64,000 nt of DNA from contig NW_003314284.1 in NCBI RefSeq assembly GCF_000143415.4, forward strand, positions 1,470,693-1,534,692, in the 5' to 3' direction. This stretch comes from Selaginella moellendorffii (lineage: Eukaryota; Plantae; Lycopodiophyta). Within the stretch, counting starts at the first letter, position 1, and each line of letters opens with the position of its first letter. This document shows, in pieces, positions 42,889 through 49,287 of this stretch. A model generated the notes under the pieces. The model was not told the DNA's origin, did no database searches, and saw nothing but the letters and a program-made list of their open reading frames with translations. A program made the position numbers and the translations under genes.

Positions 42889-44825
42889 ATGCAAAGCTCC
42901 GCGCTGGTGCTGCTGCTGGCGCTGATGATCGCGCGAGGTAAGGAAAACAGAAGCGAGATTGGATGATCGATCGATCGATCGCCCCAATCTTTCGCGCAAT
43001 TTTTTAAATGTTTTCTCTTGAATCTTCTTCTTCTTCCTCGCGCGCGCGCAGGGACGGGCGCCGACGAGACCTATCCCTACTCGTTCCTCCGCGACGCCGC
43101 CGACTCCCCGGTGTACGAGCAGTACGACTACATCATAGTGGGCGGCGGCACCGCCGGCTGCCCTCTGGCGGCGACGCTCTCCCGCTACTTCCGCGTCCTC
43201 GTCCTGGAGCGCGGTCCCTCGCCCTATGGCAACGCCAACATCACGCGCATCGAGAACTTTGGGCGCAGCCTCAACGACACCGAGGGGCAATTCACGCCCG
43301 CGCAGGCCTTCACGTCCACCGACGGCGTTCGCAACACTCGCCCGCGCGTCCTGGGCGGTGGTAGCTGCCTCAACGCTGGCTTCTACACGCGCGCCAGCCC
43401 CGACTACGTGCGCAGGGTTGGCTGGGATGCGCGCCTGGTTAACCAGTCGTATCCGTGGGTGGAGAGGGTGGTGGCGTTCGTGCCGCAGCTGGGAGCGTTC
43501 CAGAGCGCATTTAGGGCGGGGCTGCTGGAGACCGGGGTGACGCCGGACAATGGCGCCACTTTCGATCACATCTATGGGACCAAGACTGGGGGGTCGATCT
43601 TCGACCATCAGGGCAACCGCCACACCGCCGCCGACCTCCTCCGCTACGCCAGCGCCAGGAATATACTCGTGCTCCTCCGCGCCAGCGTCCAGAGGATCCT
43701 CTTCGACACCTCAGGTGAATTTCTCCTCTCTTCTCCACTTGTTGTCATCGACTTCTTTCTCTCTGTCCGATCGATTCGATTGATTCGATAACTCCTCCTC
43801 GATTCTCTGCGATTGGCGTGAGCCACCGAAGCCCGATCTCTCAGATTTTCTCGAATTTCTGGGATCCCCTGTTTCCTTATTTTACTATCTTTCTCTTCTC
43901 GGCCGGATCGTCGTGTGTGTAGGTTACCAGCCGCGCGCGATCGGGGTCCAATACCGCGATGCCAACAGCCGGATGCACATCGCGCGCCTCAATTCCAATC
44001 GCCAGAGCCAGGTGATCCTGTCCGCGGGCGCCATGGGCAGCCCCCAGCTGCTGATGCTCAATGGCATCGGGCCGCGCGCGCACCTCGAGAGCATGGGCAT
44101 CCGCGTGCTCGTCAATCTCCCAGGCGTCGGCCAGGGCATGGCGGACAACCCCATGAACACCGTCTACCTCCTCTCGCCCGCGCCCGTGGAGACGAACCTC
44201 ATCCAGGTGGTCGGGATCACGCACTACGGCAGCTTCATCGAGGCGGGCAGCGGCGAGCTCGATGGATTGAGCGCGGGCGTGCTGCTCGAGAAGGTGATCG
44301 GCCCCAGATCGAGCGGCCAGATGACGCTCACCTCGCTCGACGCCGCGGACAATCCCCAGGTCACCTTCAATTACTTCCAGGACCCGGAAGATCTCCAGAG
44401 CTGCGTGGAAGGGATCAACCAGATCGAGGAGATCATCCTCTCCAGCTCCATGCGCCGCTTTCGCTACGACGCCCAAGCTCTTCCCTCGGGCGGGACGGTG
44501 GCATCGCCGGTCCGCGCGGATTCAACGCTCCGGTCGTCGGTCAATGTCACGCTGGCCAGCTTCTGCAGGTCGACCGTACAGACCATCTGGCACTACCACG
44601 GTGGCTGCCAGGTGGGCAGAGTCGTGGACAGCGACTACCACGTGTTAGGCGTTGATGCGCTGCGCGTCATCGACGGCTCCACGTTTAACTTCTCGCCCGG
44701 TACGAACCCTCAAGCGACGGTCATGATGCTGGGAAGGTAAGTGAGATATTCGTTTTTTTCTTTGATGTGATTGGTGTTCCAGGTATATGGGATTGAGGAT
44801 TATTGCGGAGCGTATGCGCCGCTAG
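42889..44825 (+). CDS. HOTHEAD-like GMC oxidoreductase; 4 exons
   Basis: Signal peptide; YDYIIVGGGTAGCPLAATLS, RPRVLGGGSCLNAGFY, PGVGQGMADNP, TIWHYHGGC, SPGTNPQATVMMLGRY. Confidence 0.93.
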
Positions 44826-45145
44826 ATAGGCGAGATTCTAGCCCTCCATTCTTTTAGAAGAAAGAAAACCGCGAAGCTATGTATCCGTTAAACCATTCGA
44901 ACCGAAAAATCTTGGTCGCATCGTCTTCTCGCGAAGCCCTAAGGACGTGTGCTAGGGTTTCTCGATTCTCCGCCCAGGTATGATCGCGATGATCCCTCCA
45001 TCGCTCGCTGGATTCCACCGCTGGTGCGATTGGCGGATCGCGCGCTAGAGCGGCCGCGATTGTTTCGCAGGGCAGAGAATGCGGGTGGGGGATTAGCTCT
45101 CCTTGGATTGAGGCAGTGCCAGGGAAGGATGCCAGGGTGAAGATT

Positions 45146-48100
45146 ATGGCCAATGGTCGGGGGCTGATTGATATCCAGGATCTGTGCTCCAGTGCAGCTT
45201 CTCGCGCTCAGGGATTTGCTGCCAGTTCCTTCAAATGCATCGTGGCTCATGTCAAGCGCCCGCGATGCCTGGCGTCTTTCCTGGCCTGGAACCTGGGATT
45301 GACGGCGCTGGAGATCGCGCTCGGGGCAGCAACGTTTGAGATGTCGGCACCACCGCTCCAGAAGCAAATCGTCAAGGTGATCGTCTTCCCACTCTATCTC
45401 CCGCATGCGGTGGGCTTCGCAGTGGCTTGCAAGAAAGGATGCTTCGTTCTCCTGGGAAACTTTGCTGGGCTCTTCGGCGTCAGGCTCTACTTCACGGACA
45501 GGGGCGTGGAAGGCCTGAATTTCTTGAAGTCGGTGGTTCTTTTGGGGGCTGCTACTCTCAGGACGCTCGAGGTCCACTTTTGCAGCTGGATGGTGCGTAG
45601 ATTTTTGTGCTCCGAGACCAGGCTGATACCGACGATCGAATCACTTGGGGATGCTCTGTGGTACTTCCTCGTCACCTGCTTTCTCTCGGCACCTTTCGAG
45701 GCAACCATAGCTTTGATCGAGTGTGTCGGGCGCATGGTGCCGTGGAAGGAGTTTACAATCTGCTGGGCGACATGGTGGCTGGGTGTGGTAGCTGCCTCCA
45801 TCACGGTGTCACCTTTCGTTCTCCACTGCTTCGTGTGGCAGCCCAAGCCGGGGATGTTTAGGCCGGGGAAGATTGTGGAGATTTTTTTGGTCGGGTTCAT
45901 CACCGTGCTGCTGCTGATAACAGTCTACACGCTCGTCATTCCTACGTACGTGAAGCCACTGCCTTATCTTCTCTTTCCAGTCATCGTCTACAGTGCTTTC
46001 CGCTTCAACCGGATGGGATGGGCCTTCATCTTGTGCGGGATCTCCCTTTTTTGCACTTGGTCGACCGTGAAAAAGAAGGGTGCTCTCTACAATATCTCTG
46101 GAGGTGGCCCAACTGTGGAACCGCGGATTGTCATGCAGGTAGAGCTTTTTGTATCTGTTAGCTCAGCTGTAGCTGTGTCACTTGCGGCTGCTGTCAGGGA
46201 GAAGCATCAATTAGCTAAAAAGCTTGAGAAGCTCAATGAGGAGCTTGAAAGTTTAGTGCTCCAGAGAACGCATCAGCTCGTCAAGGCAAATGAGGAGTTA
46301 CAGACGTCGAAGCAAGCAGCAGAACTGGCGAGCCAAGCCAAGTCGGATTTCCTTGCCAACATGAGTCATGAGATCAGGTTTGATTATTCGTCTCGTTTTT
46401 TTTTCGCAGTGCCTTAACATACTTTGTTTTTCCTGTACAGAACTCCTATTCACGGAATACTTGGAATGTCAGCGTTGGTGCTTGGAACTTCTCTCACAGA
46501 TGAGCAGAAGGAGAACATGACCACCGTCAGCGAGTGTGCCGAGTTGCTCCTGCATATCATCAACAGCATTTTGGACCTGGGGAAAATCGAGGCTGGCCGT
46601 TTTGAAGTGGAGTTGATATCTTTTAATCTTCATCACGTCCTGAAGAGCACTGTGCACATTCTACAGCCGCGTGCGCAGGCACACAACCTTCGGCTGAGCT
46701 ATGAAATCGACAGCGCTGTGCCCGAGTTTCTGGTCGGGGACTCGGGAAAGTTGAGGCAGTGCCTGTTAAACTTAGGTGAGGCGGTGGTATACACAGTGAG
46801 CAACTAACTCTGATCCTCCGTGCAGTTGGAAATGCTCTGAAATTCACACCCGAGGGCGAGGTCCGAGTTGAGGTTTCGGTTCACAGGTTCGGAATGCAAG
46901 ACGATTCGGTTCTATCGAGACTTAACGCCTCTCAGTGGTCAGACATGTCAGAAATGATGCTGGAAGTTACAGAGACGAGAAACCTTTTCATGCCTCAACA
47001 CACGCAAGCTCACACCAAGTTTACCAACCGGGGGTCAGCCGACGAAGTGACCATTCTTTACAAGATATCGGATAGTGGGATTGGCATCAGCAAAAACAAG
47101 CTCAAGGATGTCTTCAAGCCCTTCACTCAAGCGGATGCTTCGATTTCTCGCTTATATGGTGGAACAGGACTCGGTCTCTGCGTGGTACAAAGGTAAGTTT
47201 TGGTTTTTCTAAGAACAATCTGGCTAATAAGGAAACTGCAACTGACTTTAAACTCGTTAACAGCTGCGGCGATTTTGCAGATTTGTAGAGCTGATGGGAG
47301 GTCACATACTGGTGGAAAGCGAATATGGAAAAGGCAGTAGTTTTTACATCGTTTTGCCTTACCTCTTGAACAAGGAGGGCGCTGCCCAGGAAGCATCTGG
47401 TTTCTTCGCAACAGCTGCCTCTGTGACTTCTCAAAGTACGTATTTTTTGCATAGGCAACTTATAAGTATTCTGGTTTGTGTAGGAGCCGAGACTACGCAG
47501 GGAAAACCTGTTAGTACTGAAGTCGTAAGCTCAGTTGCAGATGGTCACGAAGCCCCGGCACCTCGGGAATCTACGGACGATGAGATTTCCCGCGTCATGG
47601 TCGCCAAGGATGGCACTCAGCAAGCTCCCAGCCCTGTGACTCCGAAAGAAGAAGTCACTCTAAGCGTCAAGGACCCGAGCATTGTACAAGCAGCAGAAAT
47701 ATCGGTTGACTTAACCAAGCGCATACTCTTGGTGGAGGACAACCTTGTGAATCAGAAGGTTGCGTCTAGACTCCTCCAAAAGCATGGCCACATTGTGACC
47801 GTTGTGGGGGATGGAGTCCAAGCGATAGCGGCCGTGGACGCAAACCGGGACAACATTGATTTGATCCTCATGGACATCCAGGTAGCTTGTTCTTTTCCAA
47901 GTTTCCAGTTTCAAGTCTTCTTTCCAGATGCCGATCATGGATGGATTGGAAGCAACTCGTAGAATACGGGAACAGGAAGCCAGGGATGGTCTGAGAAAAA
48001 TGCCCATAATCGGGTTAACAGCGCATGCCATGCGTGGATACGAGGATACATGTTTTTCAGCGGGAATGGACAGTTACATGGGGAAGCCTTTTGAGATTCG

Positions 48101-48173
48101 CAAGCTTTTAGCTGCCATCGAGATGGTTGCCACTGGCAAGCAAGAAATCCACATCGACGTTCCGGAAGAATAA
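45146..48173 (+). CDS. Hybrid histidine kinase: multi-TM MASE1-like sensor + coiled coil + HisKA + HATPase_c + receiver; ~5-6 exons
   Basis: Hydrophobic N-terminal ~350 aa with WWLG and PLPYLLFP; KSDFLANMSHEIRTPIHG; GDSGKLRQCLLNLVGNALKFT; DSGIGI; YGGTGLGL; LLVEDN...LMDIQMPIMDG...KP. Confidence 0.92.
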
Positions 48174-48227
48174 GTTTCGAGGAAGCCAACTTATCATTTA
48201 TCATCTCAAGGATCCAGACAGAGGGAG

Positions 48228-49287
48228 CTAGCCTTTAAACTGATCCTTGGCGGCTCTCAACGACGCCAGCAGCTCAACCGGATCGCTCTCTCCCATATGG
48301 ACTTGGAACTCCTTCACGTTAACACGCATGAAGGGATTGGTCTGGAGCTCCTCTCGGATGGTGGAAGGGACCGTAGGCTTGTCATTCCGACGCTGCTCTT
48401 CCGTCCAGGCAACCTTCTGCTTAAGAGCATCATTGTGGGGATCGACAGACATGGCGAACTTCAAGTTCTTGGCGGTATACTGCAAGGGTGGATTCTAAAC
48501 GCTGAGAGACGGAAAGTATACAAGAAGTGGAAGACAGACCTCGTGTCCGCAGAAGACTCGAGTAGCCGGAGGCAACTCGGCTAGAACTTCGGACAGAGAG
48601 TGGTACATATCCTGGGCTTTGCCTTCGAAGAACTTGCCACAGCCGGCGACGAACTGCGCAGCGCAAGATTTTAAGACCACAGACAAGGACAAGTAAGAAA
48701 GGAAGTACCAGAGTGTCACCGGTGAAGACGGCAGGATCTCCAGACTTGTGGGTGACAAAGTAGCTGATATGGCCCTTGGTATGGCTACGAATGCCAAGAG
48801 CAGCTCTCAAGAACTAGCATCACAGACGAGAAGAAAAGAGAGGACACTTTACCATGGAGTGTGGAGGGCCTTGATCTTTACATCCTTGGACAGCTCAAGC
48901 TCCGCTCCGTGCTCCAGAGGATCCGTGCAGCCTTCCACATTATCCTTGGCACCACCGAAGACTTTGATCCCTGGGACGAGCTTCTTGATCTCGTTGTTAC
49001 CTCCAGCGTGGTCCCTGGTAGAAAAGCTTTCTTGCGGAGGAAAGAATGGAAAGCTAGCTCTACCAGTGCTTGTGGGTGGTGAGAACCATGGTCACTTGGG
49101 CTCCATGCTTCTTGGCTGCCGATAAAACGCTCTCGGGTTTCACGGGATCAACCGCCGCTGCCTGCTTGCTCGCTCCATCGATTATCCTGATCAATCAATC
49201 CAGGGAACTTTCGTCAAAGCACTCACTCTCGAGAGCTTACAGATAAGCGTAATTGTCGTCCAAACAAGGCACCGGTATCACCTCCAT
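48228..49287 (-). CDS. GLX2: Glyoxalase II (hydroxyacylglutathione hydrolase), cytosolic type; multi-exon
   Basis: [67 protein letters not shown]. Confidence 0.94.

Follow-up and report, generated by a model that had tools for sequence, protein, structure and literature searches.

A MASE1-type hybrid histidine kinase gene of Selaginella moellendorffii with a full-length output probably limited by alternative splicing

A plant gene joining a MASE1 membrane domain to a hybrid histidine kinase

The DNA analysed here (the window) is a stretch of 64,000 nucleotides (nt) from the lycophyte Selaginella moellendorffii, taken from the forward strand of contig NW_003314284.1 at positions 1,470,693 to 1,534,692. 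At window positions 45146-48173, the plus strand carries a six-exon gene with a conceptual product of 910 amino acids (aa), in which a MASE1 membrane domain precedes a hybrid histidine kinase (HK). Exon 1 is identical at 410 of 410 residues to XP_024534575.1, and residues 1-644 of the product are identical to XP_024534574.1. Both accessions are products of LOC9655983 and are named 'uncharacterized protein'. A second haplotype locus, LOC9651264, is identical at 640 of 644 residues. We consider it probable that the gene is LOC9655983, one of at least three loci for MASE1-type hybrid histidine kinases of a known plant family in S. moellendorffii, and that its product works by the mechanism proposed below.

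A reading of this DNA made from sequence only had expected that homologues might already be catalogued, and this proved correct. A group of plant MASE1-HKs with unknown function has been described (Ishida et al., 2010, cited by Kabbara et al., 2018; PMC6324907), and Kabbara et al. record its presence in P. patens, M. polymorpha and S. moellendorffii. In a 2026 paper on zygnematophytes, PF05231 (MASE1) is included among the domains of kinase clades. The Marchantia member carries the database name MpMASE1, and a literature search found no functional study of it. The class and the locus are thus both known, and the gene adds nothing new to the catalogue. Its importance is of another kind: plant MASE1 kinases form an orphan branch of the plant phosphorelay, with no known signal or phenotype.

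Exons were derived from homology and splice signals. The start codon, ATG at 45146, is the first in-frame ATG downstream of a stop that lies just upstream of 45116, and the stop codon of the gene occupies 48171-48173. All five introns have GT..AG ends and measure 46-71 nt, taking intron 3 as it is spliced in RNA. Evidence for RNA comes from contigs of four public runs (X1, X5, X8 and X11) that belong to four studies; these contigs lack the introns and are therefore RNA-derived. The joints 46377/46441, 46775/46826, 47435/47484 and 47881/47928, each with GT..AG ends, occur in all four runs, and the exon for the membrane helices is accordingly joined in RNA to the kinase exons, as the sequence-only reading had supposed. 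The features of the gene, all on the plus strand and including the 5′ and 3′ untranslated regions (UTRs), are as follows.

44915..45145 (+): 5′ UTR, minimum extent; the run X1 RNA contig begins at 44915
45146..46377 (+): exon 1, coding part, with N-terminal tail, MASE1, coiled coil and start of the H box (Pfam, RefSeq identity, AlphaFold2)
45236..45838 (+): N-terminal half of MASE1, residues ~31-231, a predicted helix bundle resembling energy-coupling factor (ECF) transporter S components
45263-46201 (+): MASE1 membrane domain, residues ~40-352, part of exon 1
46367-46369 (+): H408 codon, in exon 1
46378..46440 (+): intron 1, 63 nt, GT..AG; joint in 4/4 RNA runs
46441..46775 (+): exon 2, remainder of HisKA/DHp and start of the ATPase domain (Pfam HisKA E=8e-10; RNA contigs)
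46776..46825 (+): intron 2, 50 nt, GT..AG; joint in 4/4 RNA runs
46826..47192 (+): exon 3, N box (N525), a poorly conserved insert of ~65 aa and the G1, F and G2 boxes (HATPase_c E=6.5e-11; contigs contiguous)
47193..47263 (+): intron 3 as spliced in runs X1 and X11, 71 nt, GT..AG; joint 47192/47264, as in RefSeq isoform X1 of 652 aa
47264..47280 (+): 17 nt retained in observed mRNA, intronic if the acceptor at 47279-47280 is used; retention shifts the frame to TAG 47286-47288
47281..47435 (+): exon 4 in its productive form, C-terminal end of the ATPase domain and start of the linker (HATPase_c profile 84-109; identity to orthologues 57-75%)
47436..47483 (+): intron 4, 48 nt, GT..AG, in frame and stop-free; joint in 4/4 RNA runs
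47484..47881 (+): exon 5, low-conservation linker and first half of the receiver with E781, D782 and D827 (Pfam Response_reg)
47873-47875 (+): D827 codon, in exon 5
47882..47927 (+): intron 5, 46 nt, GT..AG; joint in 4/4 RNA runs
47928..48173 (+): exon 6, coding part, second half of the receiver with T860 and K882, and stop (Response_reg E=1.7e-11)
48174..48481 (+): 3′ UTR, overlapping the 3′ end of a convergent hydroxyacylglutathione hydrolase gene (RNA contigs)

Pfam was run on the exon translations, and exons and RefSeq proteins served as search queries. The MASE1 profile (PF05231) matches at E=6e-12 with 45.7 bits (gathering score 29.8) over profile positions 28-298 of 299. The other matches are HisKA, HATPase_c (split across exons 3 and 4) and Response_reg (split across exons 5 and 6), so that each of the four families foreseen from the sequence was recovered. 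At E up to 0.1, Pfam gave no match to CHASE, ethylene-binding, GAF or any further input domain known from plants, and no large extracellular domain is seen in the AlphaFold2 model, where the loops between helices are short. The proposal of a MASE1-like input in place of a classical plant HK input is therefore borne out. Membrane helices follow one another over ~310 residues (40-352), as judged from hydropathy peaks and from the all-helical model, and the last MASE1 helix continues into a coiled coil in that model; this is the arrangement that had been described from the letters.

Every motif that the sequence-only reading quoted is present in the spliced product. The MASE1 helices contain FPLYLPHAVG (81-90), TWWLGVV (209-215) and PLPYLLFP (271-278), and the hallmarks of the family W200, W207, W210, W211, L212, G213, P223 and R286-F287 are kept; the Asp that follows WWLG is replaced by Val in the plant clade. 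The H box MSHEIR/TP is interrupted by intron 1 and the receiver motif LMDIQ/MP by intron 5. The ATPase boxes are N525, G1 (DSGIGI, 605-610), F (FKPF, 619-622) and G2 (GGTGLGL, 634-640). A disordered linker separates the ATPase domain from the receiver, whose set of key residues is complete (E781/D782, the phosphorylatable D827, T860 and K882-P883). No HPt domain is fused to the 910-aa product.

Observed splicing of intron 3 truncates the kinase

At intron 3 the RNA departs from the homology-based gene model. The joint is 47192/47264 in runs X1 and X11 and 47192/47242 in runs X5 and X8, and the observed acceptors lie 17 or 39 nt upstream of the one predicted by homology. Retention of 17 nt (the +17 form) shifts the reading frame to TAG 47286-47288 and yields a 652-aa product, and retention of 39 nt (the +39 form) introduces three in-frame stops and yields a 645-aa product. 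Both short forms would end just past the G2 box and would lose the last ATPase strands and the receiver. Homology gives intron 3 as 47193-47280, where RNA shows 47193-47263. RefSeq isoforms match the RNA forms: the 652-aa isoform X1 (+17) is given at both alleles and the 645-aa isoform X2 (+39) at LOC9651264.

The two forms may differ in allelic source. Contigs of runs X5 and X8 splice to 47242 and also carry G for the window's A at 47190. Positions 47241-47242 of the window read AA, not AG, and the +39 form is therefore probably from the other allele; its acceptor seems to be an allele-specific splice site of the LOC9651264 allele.

Several observations weigh against a functional full-length receptor. 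The productive acceptor, 47280/47281, is used in 0 contigs of the four RNA runs, and production of the full-length kinase is inferred from conservation, not seen in RNA. The only database isoform with a receiver, the 798-aa RefSeq isoform XP_024534575.1, does use acceptor 47281, but it omits 46915-47052, 47393-47483 and 47511-47665, and the first two of these gaps lack GT..AG ends in the window. We rejected this isoform as proof of a productive mRNA for that reason. Skipping of 46915-47052, 47393-47483 or 47511-47665 is seen in none of the four RNA assemblies, and the XP_024534575.1 model looks like a frame-preserving construct and not an observed mRNA. As for a single-frame mRNA encoding both kinase and receiver, the four assemblies present +17 and +39 forms with a stop; the productive acceptor is present in the DNA, and the part downstream of it is conserved. 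The gene had been called intact, and this description stands for the DNA; it needs qualifying for the RNA, where the contigs of four runs bypass the acceptor needed at intron 3.

Since assembled contigs keep the commonest path and drop rare variants, there may be productive mRNA of lower abundance. Positions 47279-47280 of the window form a canonical acceptor that has a pyrimidine tract.

Sequence conservation beyond the intron 3 junction

Whether selection still acts past the junction was judged from an alignment of the 910-aa protein, its Selaginella paralogue (LOC9634821) and orthologues of Diphasiastrum, Sphagnum, Physcomitrium, Ceratodon and Riccia. Identity to these relatives is 70-78% in the ATPase segment just before the junction, 57-75% in the C-terminal end of the ATPase domain past it and 56-67% in the receiver; conservation of the ~65-aa insert in exon 3 is 11-21%. 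The productive junction, QR/FVELMGG, is kept in all aligned orthologues, as are all key residues of the receiver. Since conservation past the junction matches that on its other side, we conclude that the full-length protein has been selected for.

The same data can be set against a different view, namely that the locus is a truncated or silenced copy. Its receiver-less 652/645-aa products would then be decoys that pair with LOC9634821, or its mRNAs would be targets of nonsense-mediated decay, and the paralogue would do the kinase work. Such a copy would account for the +17 or +39 form in 4/4 RNA assemblies, for the RefSeq short forms X1 (both alleles) and X2 (other allele), and for the single full-length model of 830 aa that represents the paralogue. 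It also agrees with the variants that separate the RNA contigs from the window, taken as differences between alleles: 9 are synonymous and 5 non-synonymous upstream of the junction, and 1 is synonymous and 6 non-synonymous downstream. The downstream variants, however, all fall in the unconserved linker, with 0 in the receiver. Moreover, the receiver and the C-terminal end of the ATPase domain keep every key residue, at 56-75% identity across hundreds of millions of years, the acceptor at 47279-47280 is canonical with its pyrimidine tract, and contigs display the commonest path only. On balance we regard a truncated or silenced copy as rather unlikely.

The combination of dominant truncated mRNAs at both alleles with a well-conserved downstream receiver suggests regulation by alternative splicing, which probably limits the output of full-length receptor. 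For the truncated mRNAs, we infer that a splice choice, whether regulatory or leaky, is a likelier explanation than decay.

Relatives and origin of the family

A HMMER search with residues 1-350 returned 915 proteins at E up to 0.001, with a sharp step after the first ~13, all of which are from plants. When the paralogue was used as query, MASE1 kinases were found in mosses, liverworts, lycophytes, ferns (Adiantum, Ceratopteris), Ginkgo, Cryptomeria and the alga Mesotaenium; no flowering plant is among the matches of that search. The range of the family thus goes beyond the 'early diverging land plants' of Kabbara et al. (2018). The term 'non-canonical', which the sequence-only reading applied to this receptor, is apt relative to angiosperms only.

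A maximum-likelihood tree of 57 proteins places all plant rows on one side of one branch, with a Shimodaira-Hasegawa-like approximate likelihood ratio test (SH-aLRT) support of 99, and plant MASE1-HKs thereby group apart from the bacterial ones. The embryophyte sequences form two clades. Clade I (support 100) consists of bryophyte and lycophyte sequences only and holds LOC9655983 and its sister LOC9634821, which are 58% identical. To clade II (support 100) belong MpMASE1 and Selaginella LOC9644652, together with fern and gymnosperm sequences.

Some clade II kinases match PF24896, the first receiver of AHK4/CRE1, in precomputed annotation; LOC9655983 has its disordered linker at this place. This match hints that the kinase-receiver part of these clade II members resembles that of cytokinin receptors.

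Among the bacterial rows, PAS-MASE1 hybrid kinases lie nearest to the plant branch (support 98). Identity to the paralogue is 30-33%, over ~80% of its length, for bacterial proteins whose domains run MASE1-HisKA-HATPase_c-receiver-HPt, and the best 120 matches to the paralogue contain many bacterial hybrid kinases and 0 non-MASE1 plant kinases. These relationships are consistent with the whole gene having come from bacteria long ago, before zygnematophytes and land plants diverged. A probable bacterial origin had also been proposed from the sequence; the shared domain order and the adjoining PAS-MASE1 kinases make that view plausible but do not prove it, because the tree, which was made quickly, is unrooted and includes no other plant kinase classes. 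A scan of bacterial genomes with the nearest bacterial protein (P0226) recovered kinase cores only, from many phyla, and is uninformative on the donor.

Neighbouring genes and the question of contamination

Upstream on the plus strand is a GMC oxidoreductase gene (43018-44740; GMC_oxred_N and GMC_oxred_C, with an intron). It ends ~400 nt before the kinase ATG and ~175 nt before the first base of an RNA contig. Downstream on the minus strand is the gene for a hydroxyacylglutathione hydrolase (glyoxalase II), with HAGH_C at 48228-48485. Every RNA contig runs through the kinase 3′ UTR to 48481 and then skips to the next minus-strand glyoxalase exon. Nothing suggests a functional link between the kinase and its neighbours.

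MASE1 is overwhelmingly bacterial in Atlas clusters, as would be expected if the gene were a bacterial contaminant or had arrived very recently from outside plant biology. This explanation is refuted and we give it virtually no weight: five spliceosomal GT..AG introns are removed in RNA, plant genes lie on both sides, and orthologues occur in mosses, liverworts, lycophytes, ferns, gymnosperms and a zygnematophyte alga.

Predicted structure of the MASE1 domain

Residues 25-360 were modelled with AlphaFold2 from a 68-row alignment. The model is all-helical, with a predicted local distance difference test (pLDDT) score of 94.7 and a predicted template modelling (pTM) score of 0.91. It superimposes on ten bacterial MASE1 cluster models with template modelling (TM) scores of 0.81-0.84 and a root-mean-square deviation of ~2.1 Å over ~296 residues, both sides of the comparison being predictions.

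In an exhaustive structural comparison, the top rows are 13 ECF-transporter S components, all aligned to residues 7-207 of the model, and the next, unrelated rows score at most 8.5. The N-terminal half was also modelled separately (pLDDT 93.9). When it was used as a Foldseek query, S components were the only rows at TM 0.45-0.62, with probabilities of 0.6-0.98 and E values of 0.4-1.3, which are not significant; Foldseek with the whole MASE1 model gave nothing above TM 0.23. At the level of sequence, Pfam QueT, which is an S-component family, gives sub-threshold matches in 8 of 68 MASE1 domains, bacterial ones included (best E 3.3e-4; 17-18 bits, where the cutoff is 33.7). These matches are colinear from the N-terminus, over the first ~150 residues of the domains. 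The protein of LOC9655983 itself has no QueT match. Alignment of the MASE1 profile with the membrane domain of E. coli BtsS by hhalign gave no signal, so a sequence link to 5TMR-LYT is not shown, and sequence searches of the Protein Data Bank with the MASE1 region and with two alignment profiles found nothing relevant.

Because the models are predicted, the protein's own sequence lacks a QueT match and the BtsS comparison is blank, the likeness to S components serves as a lead only. Partipilo and Slotboom (2024; PMC11109136) tie the S-component fold to 5TMR-LYT kinases and MreD, and do not name MASE1. None of the papers searched connects MASE1 with the S-component fold. Docking to the ECF module depends in S components on an AxxxA motif in helix 1; the LOC9655983 protein contains A54-x3-A58, but the AxxxA columns are not conserved across the family. 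Lack of conservation in this docking motif is as expected for a signal receiver and not for a transporter subunit.

On this basis we put forward, as a tentative and rather doubtful proposal, that plant and bacterial MASE1 domains alike may be built on an S-component/5TMR-LYT bundle. Plant MASE1 kinases would then be intramembrane 'transceptor' relatives responsive to small metabolites, and in LOC9655983 the supply of the full-length form would be gated by acceptors 17 nt apart. If this is true, the signal to look for is a small metabolite bound within the membrane, and the conclusion extends to thousands of bacterial MASE1 proteins.

A proposed signalling mechanism

In the mechanism that we propose, a signal would be perceived in or at the membrane by MASE1 and would alter packing of the coiled coil in the kinase dimer. 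Coiled-coil packing would in turn set the balance between kinase and phosphatase activities, such that autophosphorylation at H408 depends on the signal and is followed by phosphoryl transfer to D827. Since no HPt domain is fused to the product, the phosphoryl group would then be handed on to HPt proteins that occur free in the plant and to its response regulators. One candidate for the signal is a small molecule lodged in the bundle of S-component type that the first ~200 residues are predicted to form; another is a partner protein, by analogy with E. coli DgcE.

The second kind of signal leads to a competing account, in which MASE1 is a docking surface for a signal-carrying membrane or cytosolic protein and binds no small ligand. 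DgcE, the best-studied MASE1 case, is acted on directly by a partner GTPase, and the literature searched offers no ligand for any MASE1 domain. Conversely, the N-terminal half resembles S components, which bind substrates, and the related fold in BtsS binds pyruvate directly; nor does any known partner of the RdcA or UhpC type adjoin the gene, whose neighbours are the GMC oxidoreductase and glyoxalase II genes. We therefore treat a docking surface as a serious possibility, though one that falls short of an even chance.

Comparison with known systems

The closest known counterparts are the other plant MASE1-HKs, represented by MpMASE1. They share the order MASE1-HisKA-HATPase_c-receiver with LOC9655983, and function is unknown in both. 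LOC9655983 differs from the MpMASE1 clade in that it belongs to the shorter, bryophyte and lycophyte clade and its main mRNAs are truncated.

Bacterial MASE1 hybrid kinases also have the same domain order. A fused HPt domain is found in theirs and is absent from the plant gene, whereas spliceosomal introns are found in the plant gene only. The bacterial motif WWLGD corresponds to WWLGV in the plant gene, where GNTLE is degenerate. Invariant MASE1 residues that are specific to plants are N49, E65, P82, H227 and Y274.

Escherichia coli offers two points of reference. In DgcE the same Pfam input stands directly before cytoplasmic signalling domains, but the output is GGDEF/EAL, unlike the kinase described here. 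The MASE1 domain of DgcE is the target of the GTPase RdcA, in the RdcA/RdcB system, and also drives proteolysis; plants are not known to have such a partner. UhpB is an E. coli MASE1 sensor with a HisKA_3 kinase and receives its signal via UhpC. Compared with the S components RibU, ThiT, BioY, FolT, PanT and QueT, and with BtsS/YpdA, MASE1 has ~3 further helices.

Classical plant HKs (AHK2-4 with CHASE, ETR, AHK1, CKI1 and AHK5) have in common with LOC9655983 the hybrid kinase core and presumably the relay through HPt proteins and response regulators. They differ in the input domain, and none ranks in the top 120 proteins matched by the paralogue.

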